A DNA stretch of 64,000 nucleotides, taken from positions 310,001 to 374,000 of the forward strand of contig OX337229.1 in assembly GCA_946965045.2 (NCBI GenBank), written 5' to 3'. Every line of letters begins with the position of its first letter. Position 1 is the stretch's first letter. The notes under the pieces are model-generated. The model was not told where the DNA came from, searched no databases, and saw nothing but the letters and a program-made list of their open reading frames with translations. Source of the stretch: Epithemia pelagica. Lineage: Eukaryota > Protista > Bacillariophyta. Position numbers and translations under genes: made by a program. This document shows, one piece after another, positions 11,145 through 49,275 of the stretch.

Positions 11145-14100
11145 ATGACGTCCAGTCTTGTGGTATTGACGACGGCGACAATGGATTCAAGTCCGTGCTT
11201 GATTTTGACCATGCCCGTGGTCCACAATGAGGCCTCCTCCTCCAAAAAATCGTCGTCGTCGTCCCATTCCTCCACCACGAGTGGCGTGGGTCGTATTTTG
11301 GTGGATTGTGGAGAAGGAACCCAACGAGCCTGTTTGGAATACAATCAACGATTGTCGACCTTACGAGCCGTTTGCTTAACCTCTTTACAGGTCACGAGTA
11401 CAGGCGGTTTACCCGGACTCTTGTTGACCGCGGCCGATGTCCAGGCCGCCGTGTCGTCGGCTGCGACATCCGTCTCCAAGAACAAGACGACTGCGAATCC
11501 AAAAACTGACAATGATCACAACAACAGCAACAACAAGACGTTGCCATATTCTCGTTCCACAACAATGGAGGTATCCTCATCCTCTTCCTCCTCACCAATC
11601 AAAGAGACTGGGATTGTTTCGAGAAAAGACCAGAGTCCTATTAGGGACAGCAAGGACAAGAAGATGCGTCCAGGGTCCATATCCTGGCCCTTTTTGGTCT
11701 TTTCCGACGACAAGAACAACAAGACCGATAGCAAAAGTTCTCCTGGAGATGCTTCCTCCTCCTCAACGACGGCCTTGCAAATTGTCGGACCACCTCAGAC
11801 GAAGACGTACCTGGCCGCCTTGCGACACTTTGTCCGTCGTCCTCACTTTCCAGTTCAAGTCCACGAACAGGCACCCGTGCAGGACGACGACACCACAAGA
11901 GTTTCGAGTAGTAGTGGTAGGACTCTATTGACGGCCGAGGAACCATCCAGTGTCACAACCGTTCCAGCAGCCACGGACTCCCACACTCATTACATGGAGG
12001 ATCCTGCTGCTGCTTCGCCGCCCTCCAAACGAGCCAAACCAACGCCGAGTTCCCAGACTACACGTACTGCTCCACCACCACAACCTGTCGTCCAGTCCTA
12101 TTATTCCATTTATCCCATGACATTTTGCGAAGAAACCAATGCAACACCATCACCAGCCCCAAACGCAACGTCGTCGTTTTCGTCGTTCAGTACTAGAACC
12201 ACCACCTGCTGGGTGTCGTACTTGTTTGTCACGGACCCCTTACCAGGCAAATTTCGACCGGATCGAGCCCAAGCCTTGGGCGTTCCTCGAGGACCCTTGT
12301 TTGCCCAACTCAAGGCCGGTCAATCCGTCACCTTTTCGGTACAAGACGATCCACAACCATTCACCAAACAAAAACAGCACAAAAAGAAGCAAAAGGCCAA
12401 ACAAAACAAGAAGAATGATTCTGCTGCTGCATCCTTGAACGCCACTGACACGGTCCATCCATCCAGCAGTTCTGATATGAACCACCAAAAAACGGTTCAC
12501 AGTTGGCAAGTGGTGGAACCTTCGTTACCCGGTGTCGGTGTCTTGGTGTTGCGATATCCACGCCAGGTTCAGGAATTGCCACGGTTTTGGAACCACGTGC
12601 AACAACAACTGTTGCAACCACATGGATTAGTATCATGCTCCTCCTCTTCATCATCATCATCAGCAGTAGCATCCAACCATGGTACCAAGAACCAGGATGC
12701 CGCAACAGGAATCGGCACTCGACTGGAACTGGTGGTTCACATTGCCAGCAAGACCGTCTTGGACGATTCCACCAGTGTCGCGTGGAGAAGACAATCGAAT
12801 CATACGGTTCGGACGGGCGAGACTCCTCCGGATCATGTTTGGATCAATATGGATCCCTCCTATTCTATTACGGGGACCACGACAACTCCTGCTACGACGA
12901 ACCACCACCACGATCCGGGAACCCCTCATGTCTCCGCCGCCCAGACGGCGCAACTCCGTTCGTTGGTGTGTCCACACCTCTATCCCTATCCCCGCCGCCG
13001 CCGCCGAGCGACGCCTGTACCAAAACGCTTGGAAACGGACCAGGACGAGAACGACAACTTGGACGACAATACGGATGGGGTGGTGGTCGGATATCCTTCG
13101 TTGGAATACCAACTTATTCCTCGTGCCAAACGAGGCTTTGTCCATTCCCCACATCGCAACGACAATCCAGAGGGGGAGAACGAGGAGGATGATACGGTTA
13201 CCAAGGAACTGAAAACACTGGCGACGGATTCGGGCGCAGTGTCCTTGGCCAAGGACATTTTGTCTCGTGTCACGACGACTACTACTTCAGCAACCACAGT
13301 AGAAGGGATTCCACACTACATGGAACCAAGTGATTCCGTGTCAACCAATACGAATGACGACCAGAAGCTTTACGGGGTAAAGGCAGTACTGGAACCAACC
13401 ACGTATGAACAGGAAAGCGGTCAGATCATTTTTACAGGTACTGCTTCGGCCGTTCCTTGCAAACATCGCAATGTGAGTGGCATTTGCCTCATGAGTCAAG
13501 CGAAAAGATCCAAGGACAACAAGCCTTCATCATCCCTGAGCTCTACTCGTCGATCCATGATGCTTTTGGATGTGGGAGAAGGGACAATCGGCCAATTGTT
13601 GCTAACGTTGGATGCCCATTCGGATTCCATTTGCACCACGCAACAACAAGTACACTCAATTTTGTCCCAAATCAAGGCTGTTTGGATATCACATCCCCAT
13701 GCCGATCATCATTTGGGCTTGTTGCGATTGCTCCATGAACGCATGGATCTCCACAATGATAACAACACTCAAGACGTTACTATGGAACGAGTCTTGGTGA
13801 TTGCACCCAAGCCCATTTTCGACTTTCTGCAAGAGTATTCGGCAATTCATCCATGGATTACTCAGACCTATCATGGTTTGGATTGTCGCGAGTTTCTCCC
13901 ACAAACACCAGACGCCAACAACAATCGTTCGCATCACTTGTTGACCAATCACAACAAGAATGCTCGTGCGGCACAAGAGCTGCTGTTTCAGTATACAGGA
14001 ATATCCCAGTGTCAATCCATTCCCGTGCAACATTGTCCCAATGCCTATGCGGTCGTGTTGGACGGAACGAGTTTTGGTCGACTCGTGTACAGTGGGGATT

Positions 14101-43246: not shown

Positions 43247-45436
43247 CTACACACGTTGAAAGATGAGAATGGTATCCATCGAAGTGCTGCCGCGCATGAT
43301 TCGCAAATCGTCATCCAAGTACACGACATCCAACATGTTGGTGGGTCCCAAACTCTTCCAATGATCCGCCTTGGTGGATGTGGGCCCGTACATGACCCGA
43401 TCGGGTTCCACGGCCAAGACCACTGAGGTTTCTCCCGTAAACAGCGACATGCTTGGTCGGAGTTCCCAATTCCCATTGACGGTCACATCAAAGGATACAC
43501 CGGGGCTTGGCACTTCAATGTGCTCCTTGTATTCCACGTCAGGAAGCAAGGCCGATGCGGATAAGGTCTGGGTCAGTCCTCCAAATTTTCCATTGGGAAA
43601 ACTCCCACCCAAGCCACTCAACCCCTTGTTGAATTTCATGGCCGACGAACTGGTGTACAGCAATTTCCAAGTTCCAGCCACGTCGGCAGTGGCAATATTT
43701 CCCCTTGTTTGCAGAAGGAGATTGGAATCCTCTTGTATCAGCTGGTTGGCTAGAGCTAATACTAAGGTTTCTTCCTTTTCGGTACTTTCCAGTCCACAGG
43801 GAAGCCTTGTTTCCTCCTCCTCACTTGTACCAATGGTAACATCATTGACCACGGCAAGTGCTCGTAATAGGTCCCCTTTGGAGGAGCCCGCAGTTTGTGG
43901 TGGTTGTTGTTTGGCCACTGCTGGTGCGGCTGGCTCGTTGTCCTCGTCGTCCTCCTCTTCAAACAAATCGTCAATGGAAGCCTTTAGGACTGCAAATGCC
44001 GCTTCATCCAAGGCGGTATCATCCTTGGACGCTTCCAATGCCGTGGCATACATTTGATCCAATTCCGACGACAACAAATCTCCATCCTGGATCATTTCTT
44101 GGAGTTCGTCCCATTGACTCAACAACGTCTCCTTGTTGACCAACAAATTCGTCGATCCCGCCAACGTTTGAAACAAACTTGCTTTGCCTGGAGCTGGTGA
44201 TGAATCCGCTTCGTCGTCCTCCTCTTCAAACAAGTCATTAATGGCGGTGCGAAGCACGTCAAAGGCCGTTGGATCGAGCGCCACGGCGTCAGTGGATTGT
44301 TTCAAGGCCACTGTGTAGAGTTGATCCAATTCCTCCATGGCCAAGTCCCCGTCTTCCATCATTTCCACCAAGTCGGGCCACTTGGTCAACAATTGCTCCT
44401 TGTTGACCAAATTCTCCGAACCGGCCAATTCCCGAAACAAGGGATCGTCGGTCGGCAGGTCCGGTTCGTCCATGGAGGCAGGTTCGACGCTTGCTTCCGG
44501 CTCGTTGGAATCTGTTTCTTCTTCTTCTGTTTCTGTTGTTGTTTCTTCCTCCAGGTCCTCAAAATCAAACAGTTCATCCACCATGGCATTGAATTGGATA
44601 AATCCCTGCAACTCAATGTAAGTTTGATCATTGACGGATGATGATGATTGTTTGGGTGTCTTGTTCCACAAGTCTAAAAATTCATCTTCGCCCAACATGC
44701 CATCCACAATCAAGGTATCCACTTCATCCCAGGCCCGCAAGGCTTGTTGGGACAGTACCAAACGATCCTTGTCGTTGGGCGTGGCAATGATTTGAAAAAT
44801 CTCCTCCAATTCCCGTCGCGTTTCGTCATCGACCAGAGGAGCCTCTTCCTCGGATGCGGATGGGACCACCTCCGTCTTGTCGTTGTTGTCATCATCATCG
44901 TCGTCGTCTTCAAACAAGTCATCAATGGCGCGATAAATTTGCACAAAGGCAGCCACATCCGCTTCTTGCTGTGAATTGCTGGAAGTAAATTGTTGCCAAA
45001 TGTCGTTGACATCTTGTTGCAACAATTCTCCCTCTTGCATCCATTCCTTGATTTCGGTAATTCGCATCAAATCCGATTGCACCATAAGGCCCGTCGATGG
45101 ATTGGCCAATTGTTGAAACAAGGCTTGGAGAGTTTCGTCCGTCAAACCGCCATTAGTCTCGGCCACCACGTCGGACGACGATGACGAGGAGGAGAAAAGG
45201 GGATCCAGTCCGAAGGAAACGGACCAACGTTGTGACACGAATGGAACGACGACTGCCATCCCCCGTCGGTGAGAATGGTTCCGGATGGGCCGATCCGACG
45301 ACCAGGAGGGAGGATGAAAGGCTTGACTGGTCGAACTCAGCAACAACAAGGTCACCACCGTGACCGAAAGGCGGCACCATTGCAGGGGCGACCACCGAGT
45401 CAACGGCGTTCCATGAGACAACAAAGATACTATCAT
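43247..45436 (-). CDS. Plastid-targeted PAP/fibrillin-domain protein with four N-terminal acidic helical repeats
   Basis: Signal ending SQA-FHP; C-terminal GTWKLLYTSS...FNKGLSG...YLDDDLRIMRG...LIFQR typical of PAP_fibrillin; four repeats of about 75 aa ending (I/V)(D/N)(D/E)LF(E/D). Confidence 0.82.
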   Translation of the reverse strand: MIVSLLSHGTPLTRWSPLQWCRLSVTVVTLLLLSSTSQAFHPPSWSSDRPIRNHSHRRGMAVVVPFVSQRWSVSFGLDPLFSSSSSSSDVVAETNGGLTDETLQALFQQLANPSTGLMVQSDLMRITEIKEWMQEGELLQQDVNDIWQQFTSSNSQQEADVAAFVQIYRAIDDLFEDDDDDDDNNDKTEVVPSASEEEAPLVDDETRRELEEIFQIIATPNDKDRLVLSQQALRAWDEVDTLIVDGMLGEDEFLDLWNKTPKQSSSSVNDQTYIELQGFIQFNAMVDELFDFEDLEEETTTETEEEETDSNEPEASVEPASMDEPDLPTDDPLFRELAGSENLVNKEQLLTKWPDLVEMMEDGDLAMEELDQLYTVALKQSTDAVALDPTAFDVLRTAINDLFEEEDDEADSSPAPGKASLFQTLAGSTNLLVNKETLLSQWDELQEMIQDGDLLSSELDQMYATALEASKDDTALDEAAFAVLKASIDDLFEEEDDEDNEPAAPAVAKQQPPQTAGSSKGDLLRALAVVNDVTIGTSEEEETRLPCGLESTEKEETLVLALANQLIQEDSNLLLQTRGNIATADVAGTWKLLYTSSSAMKFNKGLSGLGGSFPNGKFGGLTQTLSASALLPDVEYKEHIEVPSPGVSFDVTVNGNWELRPSMSLFTGETSVVLAVEPDRVMYGPTSTKADHWKSLGPTNMLDVVYLDDDLRIMRGSTSMDTILIFQRV

Positions 45437-45758
45437 GGTGGTTGCTGCTTTGCTTCTTGTGTGTTGTCGCAGCTCACAGAACCGATGGAATCTGGAGATT
45501 GGAGATTTTGTGCGAGGATTTTGCTTCCTTCGTCGTACGCCTCGGGGCGGAGTGTATCTTTCGGTTTCTCTCCAGATGACGTCATGTCGACAAAGTACGT
45601 GTTGGTTGGAGGTTTTGGGTTTGGGGCAGCAAGCAGCACTCTTTGAGCTCATAACCCATCGACACAGATTTTCAACTTTGACCCATCAACATCAACATCA
45701 ACCCATCAACAGCACATGATCCACAAATCCATTGACAGCGTGTGTTGCTCGATATATA

Positions 45759-45778
45759 CTCTCTCTCTCTCTCTCTCT
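45759..45778 (+). repeat. (CT)10 microsatellite in the divergent promoter between the fibrillin and FtsZ-C-like genes
   Basis: Read directly from the sequence. Confidence 0.95.
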
Positions 45779-45877
45779 AATAATATATTGAATTACTGAG
45801 TTTCCAACCACCACCAAGGACGACGCAAAACCAAAAGTTGATTCATTGATCCTCTACAAGCAAAAGACACACAACCA

Positions 45878-46801
45878 ATGTCGTCGTCGTCCCAATTTAC
45901 AAGAACAAGAACAATCACCAGTGGTTGGTGTCTCGTGTCACTGCTCCTGGTGGATTGGCTCGTCGTTGGCTCGGCCTTTTCTCCTCGTTTCACGAATATC
46001 ATTCGACAACCATCCGCCTCACAATGGAGATCGTCGTCTCGTGCGGTTGTGGGTCCATTGTCCTCCTCCTCCACGGATACTAGTCCTTCCTTGTTGTCGA
46101 CGGTGATTTATGCCGACGATGACGATTTCAATTTTGATCCCGGTCAAGGGGGCGTTCGATTGGCCGAAGAGTGTGCCCTGTGTTTGACCGGTACACTCAA
46201 TACCAATAATAATCGACCCCAACCCGAAAGCTTTGTCCGGTACACCCAATTGACACCCCTGGACGACAACGACAATACGATTCCCTCGCAGGTCACTATT
46301 GTTGGTACGGGACAAGGCGCGGAATTGTATCAAGATCCAAAAGAGGGCACCACGCAACGGATTGAATTGGCACCTCTGCAAGCCATTCAAACCTTGTGCG
46401 CCAATGTCATGGAATCGGGCCCGCTGCGGGATGCCATGAGCGGTAGTAGTTCGCTGTATGTGAATTTGGCGGGCGGCAATGACGTCCAAGTCTTGGAAGT
46501 CTTGGCCGCCCTGATGGAATTTCAACAAGCCTTGGACACGGCCTTGAAGAATTCCAACACAACGACCAAAAAGGGAGGACCCACTGTCACGTTTACCTCC
46601 TTGACGCATCCCTCTATTCCACCGCTCGAGGTGACCGCGACACTGGTGGCCGTCCTGGACGACGATGAAGAAGAAGATGGCTTTCCCAGTACTCCACCTT
46701 CGGGAATCGAAAAGGCTGTGGCGGCTGGAACCATTTTTTCCAATTCCAAGGGACAGTATTTTACCGTACTGGAAGAAGATATCAACCCCGATTTGTTCTA
46801 A
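45878..46801 (+). CDS. Predicted plastid-targeted protein, 307 aa, with an FtsZ C-terminal-domain-like region and no GTPase domain
   Basis: Signal WCLVSLLLVDWLVVGSA-FSP; motifs VGTGQG, SGSSSLYVNLAGGNDVQVLEV, VTFTSLTHPSIPPLEVTATLVA. The CDS is solid; the fold call is inference. Confidence 0.72.
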   Translation: MSSSSQFTRTRTITSGWCLVSLLLVDWLVVGSAFSPRFTNIIRQPSASQWRSSSRAVVGPLSSSSTDTSPSLLSTVIYADDDDFNFDPGQGGVRLAEECALCLTGTLNTNNNRPQPESFVRYTQLTPLDDNDNTIPSQVTIVGTGQGAELYQDPKEGTTQRIELAPLQAIQTLCANVMESGPLRDAMSGSSSLYVNLAGGNDVQVLEVLAALMEFQQALDTALKNSNTTTKKGGPTVTFTSLTHPSIPPLEVTATLVAVLDDDEEEDGFPSTPPSGIEKAVAAGTIFSNSKGQYFTVLEEDINPDLF

Positions 46802-47094
46802 TACTACTACTAACAAGTAAGTTAAATAACTCTCTCATTCTCTTGTCGCTGTCGTCGTCGTCTACGTGGATTGAGATTCGACAGTGATTATGGACGCATG
46901 AGAGGCTGTTATGTTTTTTTGACTTATCGGTAGAGACCCCTCAGTATTCGGGGCGAGATCTACGTAAGGTCGGTTTGGCATGTAGGTTTGGTGTTTTTCT
47001 TGGTGCCATGTACCTGCTATGGTTCGGCTCGGCTCGCCGCCGAGTCGACGAAACCACCACATATATATTCGTGTCCATCACCGACAAAAGTGTC

Positions 47095-49275
47095 TTATAG
47101 CAAGCAAAAGAACGTGAATCCCACTCGAATCACAACACTGATTTTGGTGGCAATAGAAATGGGTCTCACTTCTCGCATTACGGCACATGTGTTTGGTCGT
47201 TGTTCTTGATGCAGCACAACCGACGCAGCACCACAGTCCGTGCGCCATCCTCCCCCAAAAGGGGAGACCCGCCATTCTTTGGCGCATGCAGTGCTTGTGT
47301 AGTTTCCAGAGGACACCACGAGTTTTGGCGACAAGGTTTCAAGAATATTGCCCACCACAAAAACACACCACAACAAGCTTGTTAAGTCGAATTTGGTGGT
47401 GGTCGTGTCCGTCCGAGAGGATGACCCTGACGACGCCATGCTGGTCGACGACGACAACGACGACATGGTTCGCAATCGTTTGCGCAAGGCCTTGGCCCAC
47501 TTTTTGCCATCTTGTCGATAGATAAAGAGGTAACAATCTTCCATGCACAATTGGGTGTGTCCCAAACAATCAAACGACGATGGATCGGTGGTGGTATCGG
47601 CAAAGGGATCATTGATGCGTTGACAGACCATGGAGGTGCCCAAAAACCCGTAGGTACACAAAAAGACCAGCAGGGCCGGGACGAGGGGTGTCTCGTTCAA
47701 GTATCCGGCATTGCTGTCATCACTCCAGGTTGATACATGACACATGACCAGGGGCAAGGTAAAGACCCAGGCAATCAAAATGGTATGCGCCAATTGCAAA
47801 ACGGGAAAGGGAATGGGGGTTTGAATGAGAGTGTACAAGGTGGAAAAGGATTGCAAAATGACACCGACACAATCTAACAATTTCAATTCTTCGTTACAGT
47901 CATGTTGCCATGGACTTGTTGTTTTTGTTGTTCTTGTGGATGATGATGCATGCTTGGAGGAGGATTGGCCAAACCAGGTGCCATCGCGTTGTTTCATAAT
48001 TTCCCGACGAACGTTCCAGGCCAATAACATGGGAGCTCGCATCAAATCGTCCGCTTCCACACGATCTTGGCGAGGAACATGCGCCAATGTTTGTCGTAAG
48101 GTGCCCCATCGACTCGTAGCACTCGTGGTGGTGGTGGCTGTAGGTTTTGTTGTAGTTCCGATACTGGAAGGTGCAGGAAACAAAGATTTGGACGACGACG
48201 ACGATGATGATTTCAGAATCGATTTCAATGGCAAATTTTGGTCCACCGACAAGGAGGATGCCACTGTCGTGGATGGATCAAAGGACACGCGTTTCTTGGT
48301 AGACTCCTCCTTTGCTGGTTCCGTCGGCTTCTCCGTGTTGTTTGTGGTCCATGCCTCGTTGCTGGTCTTGTTGTTGTTGGTGATACTGTCCTTGTCACGT
48401 GATACGGCAGGTTGCTTGCCGTCGTCCACCCACAGAGGATCGGGCTTGTCGTCGCTGGTTCTCGTCGTGGTGGTGGTGTTGTGGTGGTTGTGGGTATCCC
48501 ACAATTCGTCTTGGACTTCTTGCAACATATAGGGCAATTGCCACGGATTGGTATGAATGCGATATTCCAAGACGGCCAAGACGACACGCAACAAGACGAG
48601 GACGGCATAGGTGACATCGTGTCGCCATTGTTTGGCACCGTGACTGTCGTCGTTGGCGGTGAGCAAACAGGCATGGGCCACCAAATCTCGCGAGGCACAA
48701 AAGACACCGGCCTGCAAGGTTTGAGCCTTTTTTTGGTAATTGTCCACGGCCCGCTTGACGCGACCCGTCAACAAAAAGGACAAGAGGGGAGCCATGTAAC
48801 CATGCGCCGAAGGACTGGCCGTCAGGTCCAATTGACGATGCGTTTTCAAATACCACACGACAACGACCCAAATCATGTTGAGGACGCAATATTTCCAAAC
48901 TTGAGGCCAGACCGACCCATAGGTTTCCATCAAGACACGGAAATAACTAGAATCATCCCAGATCAAGGGACGAATCGCGTGATTTTCAAATTCGTCATCC
49001 CAAATACTGCGCGACGACCAATCGTCGTCATCATCATCATCGTCGTCTTCATCGTCACTACTCGATTGTTTCTCCAACAATTGTTGTTGCTGTTTGGCAA
49101 GCACGCTTTCCACAACAAGATCGTCGAAATGTCGTGGTAGCAAGGATTTGCTGGCACCTCGTCCCAATGGGTTCTTGGTTGTTGTTCTTGTAGTAGTAGC
49201 AGTAGCAGCAGGATGCCCTCCTGGCTTTTTGTGCATGCCAAATGGCATCCACGAGGCGAAATGGCGACGGTCCAT
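47095..49275 (-). CDS. Bestrophin-like (UPF0187/RFP-TM) anion channel, divergent
   Basis: YGSVWPQV, LLSFLL, SRDLV, IQTPIPFPVLQLAHTILIAWVFTLP, YGFLG, INDPF...FD. The 3' end may be over-extended. Confidence 0.8.
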   Translation of the reverse strand: MDRRHFASWMPFGMHKKPGGHPAATATTTRTTTKNPLGRGASKSLLPRHFDDLVVESVLAKQQQQLLEKQSSSDDEDDDDDDDDDWSSRSIWDDEFENHAIRPLIWDDSSYFRVLMETYGSVWPQVWKYCVLNMIWVVVVWYLKTHRQLDLTASPSAHGYMAPLLSFLLTGRVKRAVDNYQKKAQTLQAGVFCASRDLVAHACLLTANDDSHGAKQWRHDVTYAVLVLLRVVLAVLEYRIHTNPWQLPYMLQEVQDELWDTHNHHNTTTTTRTSDDKPDPLWVDDGKQPAVSRDKDSITNNNKTSNEAWTTNNTEKPTEPAKEESTKKRVSFDPSTTVASSLSVDQNLPLKSILKSSSSSSSKSLFPAPSSIGTTTKPTATTTTSATSRWGTLRQTLAHVPRQDRVEADDLMRAPMLLAWNVRREIMKQRDGTWFGQSSSKHASSSTRTTKTTSPWQHDCNEELKLLDCVGVILQSFSTLYTLIQTPIPFPVLQLAHTILIAWVFTLPLVMCHVSTWSDDSNAGYLNETPLVPALLVFLCTYGFLGTSMVCQRINDPFADTTTDPSSFDCLGHTQLCMEDCYLFIYRQDGKKWAKALRKRLRTMSSLSSSTSMASSGSSSRTDTTTTKFDLTSLLWCVFVVGNILETLSPKLVVSSGNYTSTACAKEWRVSPFGGGWRTDCGAASVVLHQEQRPNTCAVMREVRPISIATKISVVIRVGFTFFCLL

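Follow-up and report, generated by a model that had tools for sequence, protein, structure and literature searches.

The window analysed here is a 64,000-nucleotide stretch of the genome of the diatom Epithemia pelagica (contig OX337229.1, positions 310,001 to 374,000 of the forward strand). At 45878..46801 on the plus strand it carries an open reading frame (ORF) which starts with ATG, counts 307 codons plus a stop, and encodes a protein of 307 amino acids (aa). The protein is, very probably, both a relative of the C-terminal half of the cell division protein FtsZ and a protein directed to the plastid. A sequence-only reading had placed a plastid-targeted, stand-alone FtsZ C-terminal-domain-like protein at precisely these positions, and the ORF list confirms it. 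The flanking genes both lie on the minus strand, and encode an acidic repeat protein (43247-45652) and a bestrophin-like protein (47095-49275). No other FtsZ-like sequence was found elsewhere within the 64-kb window. The gene and the segments of its product are listed below.

45878..46801, plus strand: complete intron-less coding sequence (CDS), from the ORF list, the contig cover of the public runs X3 and X4, and the ratio of nonsynonymous to synonymous substitution rates (dN/dS).
45878..45976, plus strand: signal peptide, residues 1-33, with predicted cleavage between GSA and F, from a hydrophobic 19-mer and a small-x-small pattern followed by Phe.
45977..46105, plus strand: transit-peptide-like segment, residues 34-76, Phe first, from composition, dN/dS of 0.53 and low model confidence (predicted local distance difference test, pLDDT).
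46106..46216, plus strand: family-specific N-terminal element, residues 77-113, from the top-conserved columns and the model.
46217..46663, plus strand: FtsZ C-terminal-domain-like core, residues 114-262, from hhalign, the profile of the family alignment A2, Foldseek and VIA-align.
46238..46291, plus strand: equivalent of T7 loop and helix H8, shortened, residues 121-138, from a high-confidence hhalign block.
46322..46375, plus strand: family-specific insertion between S7 and H9, residues 149-166, E-L-Y-x-D-P-G...A-P, from the column map.
46463..46501, plus strand: S8-H10 signature N-x-x-G-G-x-D-x-x-x-x-E-V, residues 196-208, from the column map.
46550..46579, plus strand: lineage-specific insertion of 10 residues, residues 225-234, from gaps in 92-100 of 102 family members.
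46664..46702, plus strand: variable acidic/Ser-Pro linker, residues 263-275, from sparse unconserved columns and a dip in pLDDT.
46703..46798, plus strand: conserved C-terminal element, residues 276-307, from column conservation and the C-termini of 102 members.

Searched alone, the 307-aa protein matches no Pfam domain at E<=10 and nothing in NCBIfam. A phmmer search of the PDB with the single sequence returned only EMC4 (E 0.2, a chance match), and a feature search of the ESM Atlas gave scores of ~0.8, at chance level. Relatives are numerous. An initial word search collected 12, including a Phaeodactylum tricornutum 'predicted protein', and an exhaustive profile search raised 143 cluster representatives at E<=1e-3, of which 100 at E<=1e-30. 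Family members are almost all 215-320 aa long, and no ordinary FtsZ protein is found among the 143 representatives. The family alignment, called A2, includes 102 sequences; a repeat of the word search using this alignment added almost no members or names.

Homology to FtsZ emerged from family-level comparisons. When the A2 profile was run against PDB sequences, FtsZ made up 37 of the 38 matches at E<=10, and B. subtilis FtsZ ranked first (E 1e-5), aligned over FtsZ residues 238-324. When members were scanned singly, 40 of the 102 matched the Pfam family FtsZ_C (PF12327) at E<=1 (best E 1.2e-5), while no other family was matched by more than 8; PF00091 (Tubulin) is not among the Pfam families matched by the 102 members. 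The FtsZ_C gathering score (27 bits) is not reached, the best score being 17.7 bits among 10 members scanned singly. Aligned by hhalign to a profile made of 18 diverse FtsZ sequences, A2 gave a probability of 95.6% (E 1.2e-8, 120 columns), and residues 114-263 paired with E. coli FtsZ 194-317. As a reversed A2 control failed in the same test (probability 0.9%, E 0.06), the match lies far beyond chance. The 18 sequences were drawn from plasmid and chromid records, since a contig scan with E. coli FtsZ yielded close gammaproteobacterial genes only. When hhalign was run against E. coli FtsZ alone, the alignment was in register and insignificant; a low-diversity gammaproteobacterial FtsZ alignment gave an out-of-register local match.

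The sequence-only reading had aligned by hand three segments encoded at 46301-46654, a stretch which corresponds to residues 142-259 and falls inside the region aligned to the FtsZ C-terminal domain. All three pairings were reproduced by hhalign: in GTGQG, G145 corresponds to FtsZ G228 in strand S7; in SGSSSLYVNLAGGNDVQVLEV, N196, G200, D202 and E207 correspond to N263, G267, D269 and E274 of E. coli FtsZ; and in VTFTSLTH...VTATLVA, V237-A258 corresponds to FtsZ V292-A312. We conclude that residues 114-262 are homologous to the FtsZ C-terminal domain, though diverged from it.

Fold prediction leads to the same protein. Two AlphaFold models were built, one from a 12-sequence input (mean pLDDT 67), the other from a 102-sequence input (mean pLDDT 81, >90 over most of the mature part). 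Run with either model against the PDB, Foldseek returned FtsZ in all of the best 50 rows listed (E 2e-5 to 5e-4, probability 1.0). Pairwise comparison by VIA-align gave Z scores of 7.2-9.9 to FtsZ, with a root-mean-square deviation of ~3 A over ~100 residues, and paired model residues 99/137-261 with FtsZ ~200/221-316. In a scan of 48,161 representatives made independently of Foldseek, two FtsZ chains came first, 2-3 Z units ahead of the next folds, which are 3c8l (deposited as an FtsZ-like protein of Nostoc), the OmpA-like SiiA, Rid-family proteins, CetZ, DhaK and tubulin. In the ESM Atlas, the nearest cluster is a 195-aa hypothetical protein family with FtsZ_C, followed by full-length FtsZ. 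The sequence-only reading had proposed an AlphaFold model and a Foldseek search as a check, and a structural match was found, with FtsZ at its top. Its proposal of a stand-alone, GTPase-less FtsZ C-terminal-domain-like protein is borne out by profile-profile alignment, profile search of the PDB, Pfam scans of single members and fold searches alike.

The core retained from FtsZ includes the T7-H8 segment, strands S7 to S10, and helices H9 and H10. The nucleotide-binding domain, nearly all of H7, the FtsZ linker and the C-terminal peptide are lost; the hhalign match starts only at FtsZ residue 194, and solely the end of H7 (FtsZ 194-204) is aligned. Inspection of the sequence and the lack of any Pfam hit at E<=10 agree with the earlier statement that the GGGTG(S/T)G signature and the GTPase domain are missing. 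In most members the T7-H8 segment reads V-[D/E]-x-x-x-V-x-x-x-L-x-x-x-G. The synergy loop N-x-D-x-x-D of the FtsZ T7 region is not found: the column of N207 features E, P or S, that of D209 has D or E in 52% of members, and that of D212 in 19 of 74 occupied cells. The stretch D-F-x-F-D...GGVRLA, close to the N-terminus, had been considered as a remnant of T7-H8, and was ruled out because hhalign places T7-H8 at residues 121-138. Further along, the S7 glycines G145 and G147 and helix H9 (A-P-x-x-A) are retained, as is the S10 pattern T255-V-V-A258, equivalent to FtsZ T309...A312. The clearest shared feature is the S8-H10 signature, in which N196-x-x-G199-G200-x-D202-L-x-x-x-E207-V208 matches FtsZ N263...G267-x-D269-L270...E274. 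Within the family N is found in 95/102 members, the two glycines in 98/102 and 96/102, D in 87/102 and E in 91/102; in the corresponding columns of the FtsZ set N is found in 14/18, G in 12/18, D in 13/18 and E in 17/18.

N- and C-terminal elements that occur solely in this diatom family enclose the core. The N-terminal element, which falls outside the hhalign match to FtsZ, features the most conserved columns of the family (I77...D87-x-G-x-G-G-V-R-L-A-x-E98, and an invariant G105), and is modelled as a helix (92-98) and a strand (100-107). The insertion between S7 and H9 has no counterpart in FtsZ; conservation is 88% or more at E149, Y151, D153, P154, G155 and P166, and a beta-hairpin is modelled at 150-163. 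The insertion at 225-234 is common to the Epithemia protein and to its 85%-identical relative. The C-terminal element carries the motif G284-E-V-Y-F-x-x-G292-K-(Y/W)-(W/Y)-T296-V-x-E-E-D-I-N, and the protein ends four residues later. Family members terminate as ...E-E-D-I-N-T/P-A/D-x-x, with no match to the core motif D/E-I/V-P-x-F/Y-L of FtsZ C-termini (PMC4641359). The acidic tail LEEDINPDLF pointed out by the sequence-only reading is indeed present; it is, however, part of a conserved motif confidently folded in the model (pLDDT ~90-97 over 280-300) rather than a floppy tail, and is a structural or functional motif.

Upstream of the core, the protein features the bipartite presequence of nuclear-encoded diatom plastid proteins. 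The hydrophobic maximum over 19 residues begins at residue 16 (Kyte-Doolittle value 1.85), and GSA followed by FSP is found at residues 31-36. In diatom import, a signal peptide, a Phe at position +1 and a transit-like region are the hallmark of stromal proteins (the ASAFAP motif, on which ASAFind relies). Of the 102 relatives, 91 start with Met and have 25 or more presequence residues, and by inspection almost all close the hydrophobic region with a small-x-small pattern and a following Phe. An automatic site rule, which undercounts because it sometimes stops within the hydrophobic core, found an aromatic residue or Leu at the site in 82 members, and Phe in 55. The transit-like stretch is rich in Ser, Thr and Arg and has nearly no acidic residues, the family average being 29% for S+T and 4% for D+E. 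For the Phaeodactylum orthologue, the PhaeoNet table reports 'Chloroplast' by ASAFind and 'signal peptide' by HECTAR (PMC7596299). The ASAFind call and the presequences of 102 relatives uphold the plastid targeting claimed from the Epithemia sequence. No localisation study of the protein or its orthologue was found in the literature searched. The mature protein measures ~24.7 kDa, has a pI of ~4.05, and features neither a membrane segment nor repeats.

The gene is genuine, and purifying selection acts on it. In the comparison with the 85%-identical relative, dN/dS is 0.32 overall; the mature part stands at 0.22, the presequence at 0.53. The three-gene order is conserved around this relative, on another assembly. 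The divergent upstream gene lies just 225 bases away from the start codon, which leaves no space for a further exon upstream. Contigs from four public runs, of types not on record, were mapped onto 44800-47800; the interval 45747-45789 was left out of read mapping as a repeat. Two runs cover the region evenly, in a DNA-like manner, and the other two (X3 and X4) are patchy. Within 45100-47100, run X3 gives cover only at ~45710-46819, mostly at 45810-46819; run X4 has zero depth at 45507-45809, and its cover begins at 45810. X3 and X4 contigs span the ORF as overlapping pieces without internal joints, and the upstream spacer is not contiguously covered. The pattern is suggestive of an intron-less transcript, whose ends contigs of this kind cannot prove. 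Taken together, this is an expressed nuclear diatom gene whose product, after processing, is a soluble, acidic, plastid-directed protein of ~25 kDa.

Single-base differences (A>G, C>T, A>G, T>C, G>T), found at about half depth in all four runs, are clustered at 46576-46633, within the CDS, and at 46966; they look like two diploid haplotypes rather than errors. One X3 contig omits 64 bases at 45834-45899 (ends AA..TT, no intron signature), which would remove the annotated start codon. Seen in a single contig with a 36-base side, the skip is possibly a deletion allele or an assembly artefact. A (CT)n microsatellite is located at 45758-45780, inside the 225-base spacer common to both divergent genes, and reads seem cut there. 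The upstream neighbour is a very acidic protein of 801 aa with several repeats of a ~90-residue module (L..W..L.EM..DG.L...ELD..Y), with only a weak PAP_fibrillin match at the extreme C-terminus (E 1.8e-4). The downstream neighbour, of 726 aa, matches Bestrophin_2 (E 2.4e-13) and has long Ser/Thr-rich low-complexity inserts; a bestrophin-like gene also adjoins the gene of the 85%-identical relative.

Family members which carry an organism name all belong to diatoms (Phaeodactylum, Entomoneis, Odontella, Pseudo-nitzschia, Chaetoceros, Fragilaria), with the exception of one copy labelled as the foraminifer Nonionella, which we take to be diatom material, since Nonionella holds diatom kleptoplasts. 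Most members are metagenomic or transcriptomic sequences without organism name, so that the family may extend beyond diatoms. A quick maximum-likelihood tree has a weakly supported basal split, with centric genera in one half and araphid and raphid pennate genera in the other. The Epithemia protein groups with an Entomoneis sequence with strong support. The tree roughly follows diatom phylogeny, and fits one gene vertically inherited since early diatoms. One unnamed member, P0012, falls in the half holding the named centrics (Odontella, Chaetoceros), beside neither of them. The P0012 contig (L085:3072-3995 and 11872-12042) also encodes radial-spoke protein 3 and a ParcG-like protein, which indicates that its host makes flagella.

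The Phaeodactylum orthologue (XP_002178358, B7FUQ1, PHATRDRAFT_34093; locus L083:6001-6756) measures 251 aa. Phatr3_J34093 is presumably the same gene, by naming convention rather than by sequence check. The protein has been seen by mass spectrometry in a whole-cell proteome (4 peptides, 19.5% coverage; supplement of PMC8252717). PhaeoNet files Phatr3_J34093 as KEGG K03531, 'cell division protein FtsZ', and assigns it by weighted gene co-expression network analysis (WGCNA) to the chloroplast-enriched 'blue' module, together with the genuine FtsZ genes J42361 and J14995; the missing GTPase half is not mentioned there (PMC7596299). A BLAST inventory lists for P. tricornutum three other FtsZ proteins and DRP5B, and reports no ARC6, MinC, MinD, MinE, ARC3, PDV or MCD1 (PMC4641359). 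No account of the protein as a C-domain-only FtsZ relative and no functional work were found in the literature searched, nor any mention under B7FUQ1, XP_002178358 or EEC50023. The sequence-only reading had called the protein undescribed. This is correct for the truncation, described in no paper reached, and not for the gene, as Phatr3_J34093 is already listed as an FtsZ-type division protein (PMC7596299). Judging from the sequence, Phatr3_J34093 appears to be mis-filed as 'FtsZ', and the annotation should be corrected: the protein cannot bind GTP or polymerise as FtsZ does.

What could such a protein do in the stroma? Three observations link it to division: the retained bottom-face signature of FtsZ, the co-expression with two plastid FtsZ genes, and a P. 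tricornutum gene set with FtsZ and DRP5B but without Min, ARC3 or ARC6. The C-terminal half of FtsZ makes the 'bottom' longitudinal face of the subunit, which is GTPase-activating and inserts the T7 loop into the GTP site of the neighbour. As the bottom-face signature is kept and the top face is absent, subunit mimicry would be the simplest mechanism. The retained bottom-face elements, of which the S8-H10 signature N..GG.D....E would be the clearest docking element, may dock on the nucleotide (top) face of plastid FtsZ monomers or of filament ends. Since no top face would be offered in turn, a further subunit could not add; without the catalytic Asp pair, the protein would probably not trigger hydrolysis at the docked site. 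FtsZ would be capped or sequestered, and the assembly or turnover of the Z-ring tuned, in a lineage in which no Min, ARC3 or ARC6 regulator is known from Phaeodactylum. We infer the function entirely, and put at roughly 0.5 the probability that the protein is an FtsZ subunit mimic which caps or sequesters plastid FtsZ. That the protein acts directly on FtsZ, in the first place through capping or sequestration, has nearly even odds. The sequence-only reading had suggested that it could cap, bundle or poison Z-ring filaments, a proposal which is likewise conjecture. More tentative, and somewhat doubtful when taken as a whole, is the full proposal that a dedicated diatom stromal 'half-FtsZ' docks on the GTP face, caps or sequesters FtsZ, and supplies the Z-ring control which pennates seem to lack.

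Some observations weigh against a capping mimic. The best-conserved positions of the family are found in its own motifs (GGVRLA, ELYxDPG, GK(W/Y)(W/Y)TV..EDIN) and not at FtsZ interface residues, and the key surface of the family may be new for this reason. The T7 Asn and Asp residues are unconserved in the family. The N..GG.D....E signature may owe its conservation to folding rather than binding. The 'blue' module is among the largest and generally chloroplast-enriched, which makes co-expression weak evidence. As to targeting, MitoFates describes the Phaeodactylum orthologue as 'possessing mitochondrial presequence' (PMC7596299).

The family's own motifs, being its best-conserved parts, make the co-option of an FtsZ-derived domain the main rival. 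According to this explanation the fold alone was inherited, and the protein would serve in the plastid, through family-specific surfaces, a partner or process unrelated to FtsZ filaments. The loss of the T7 catalytic residues, the weakness of the co-expression evidence and the strongest conservation lying in motifs absent from FtsZ all fit, and the same fold has unrelated functions in Rid, DhaK and OmpA-like proteins. On the other hand, the N..GG.D....E signature is kept at ~85-98% across the family, and the family has been retained across diatoms alongside plastid FtsZ. Co-option is a serious explanation, to be judged somewhat unlikely. The protein may otherwise be a Z-ring accessory which, instead of capping filament ends or sequestering FtsZ as a mimic, acts as a bundler or adaptor, through lateral binding to FtsZ or as a bridge between FtsZ and further division proteins. 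Additional binding sites could be provided by its conserved elements at the N- and C-terminus, in diatoms which are without organisers of the ARC6/ZipN type; the mature protein, however, has neither membrane segment nor repeats, no data point to lateral contacts, and we hold this role improbable.

That the gene is a decaying FtsZ duplicate, or that its product is retained in the endoplasmic reticulum, secreted or held in the periplastidial space, is very improbable: the plain 'signal peptide' call by HECTAR on the Phaeodactylum orthologue would suit a non-plastid product, but dN/dS of 0.22, 143 clusters with conserved motifs, mass-spectrometry peptides and the family-wide Phe at +1 after the signal peptide all speak against these options. 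Convergence, by which the domain would not be an FtsZ homologue but a generic alpha/beta sandwich with two layers, as in the chorismate-mutase/Rid type, could draw on the lack of a Pfam hit for the 307-aa protein alone and on VIA-align Z scores only moderately high at 7-10 when Rid, DhaK and OmpA-like folds reach 4-6, but is the least credible explanation and largely refuted already by evidence independent of fold prediction (hhalign 95.6%, 37/38 PDB matches, 40/102 members matching FtsZ_C) and by the failure of the reversed control.

The preferred reading, an FtsZ subunit mimic, matters since the division of secondary plastids in algae is poorly understood, and the set known in Phaeodactylum consists, by BLAST, of FtsZ and DRP5B, with no known factor that positions or tunes the ring. 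What is new here is an FtsZ-derived, GTPase-less, single-domain family, of which the identity is well supported and the role as FtsZ mimic or cap is what we infer. Diatom-wide, vertically inherited and plastid-targeted, this family derived from the interface half of FtsZ is a concrete candidate for tests in Phaeodactylum, which is genetically tractable, and where the orthologue Phatr3_J34093 is detectable as a protein. Should binding to FtsZ be confirmed, a natural half-subunit mimic would be a new mode of regulation of a cytoskeletal polymer; if a half-FtsZ acts as a cap, it would be the first case in nature of a tubulin-family polymer regulated by one half of the polymer's own subunit.

Among known systems, the closest in sequence is FtsZ_C (PF12327), to which the core is homologous over T7-H8, S7-S10 and H9-H10, with the same fold, and with which it shares the N-x-x-G-G-x-D-L-x-x-x-E signature and the S10 pattern T-V-V-A. 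In contrast to FtsZ, the diatom protein is without nucleotide-binding domain, linker, C-terminal peptide and T7 Asn/Asp residues, and keeps only the end of H7; the family has a conserved 13-residue insertion after S7 and N- and C-terminal elements of its own, and is below threshold in Pfam. Bacterial proteins made of FtsZ_C alone, such as Nostoc Npun_R1471 (PDB 3c8l), are likewise small and feature the FtsZ_C-type sandwich only, but have no plastid presequence. The fold match to 3c8l (Z 6.4 and 5.1) is below that to true FtsZ (7.2-9.9), and 3c8l is not found among the A2 profile matches to PDB sequences at E<=10. ESM Atlas clusters of 115 and 195 aa with PF12327 are further bacterial stand-alone proteins of the FtsZ_C type. 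Shortened FtsZ paralogues are known in Hyphomicrobiales, where the extra FtsZ1 and FtsZ3 of Agrobacterium have been proposed to tune division, and FtsZ1, when continuously expressed, inhibits it (PMC13732431). In contrast to the diatom family, these keep the GTPase half, the opposite one, and are bacterial rather than organellar.

ARC3 of green plants contains an FtsZ-like region without GTPase function. If this holds, ARC3 is the nearest functional precedent for the diatom protein. It inhibits the Z-ring in the plastid stroma, acting directly on FtsZ2 in a system that lost MinC, and is long and multidomain, with MORN repeats at its C-terminus (PMC13650779). In contrast, the diatom protein has neither MORN nor other Pfam domains, and members of the family nearly all measure 215-320 aa; the family is not orthologous to ARC3. 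The structures compared by VIA-align also include FtsZ bound by bacterial inhibitors (SulA:FtsZ 1ofu and FtsZ:MciZ 4u39). SulA and MciZ are small proteins which act on a longitudinal face of FtsZ and block or cap assembly, and isolated or mutated FtsZ interface halves act comparably. The action proposed for the diatom protein would be, by analogy, of this capping or blocking kind, although SulA and MciZ share neither sequence nor fold with it. The FtsZ face to which they attach is that of the C-terminal domain; this is the face that the diatom protein would imitate, itself binding on the opposite side.

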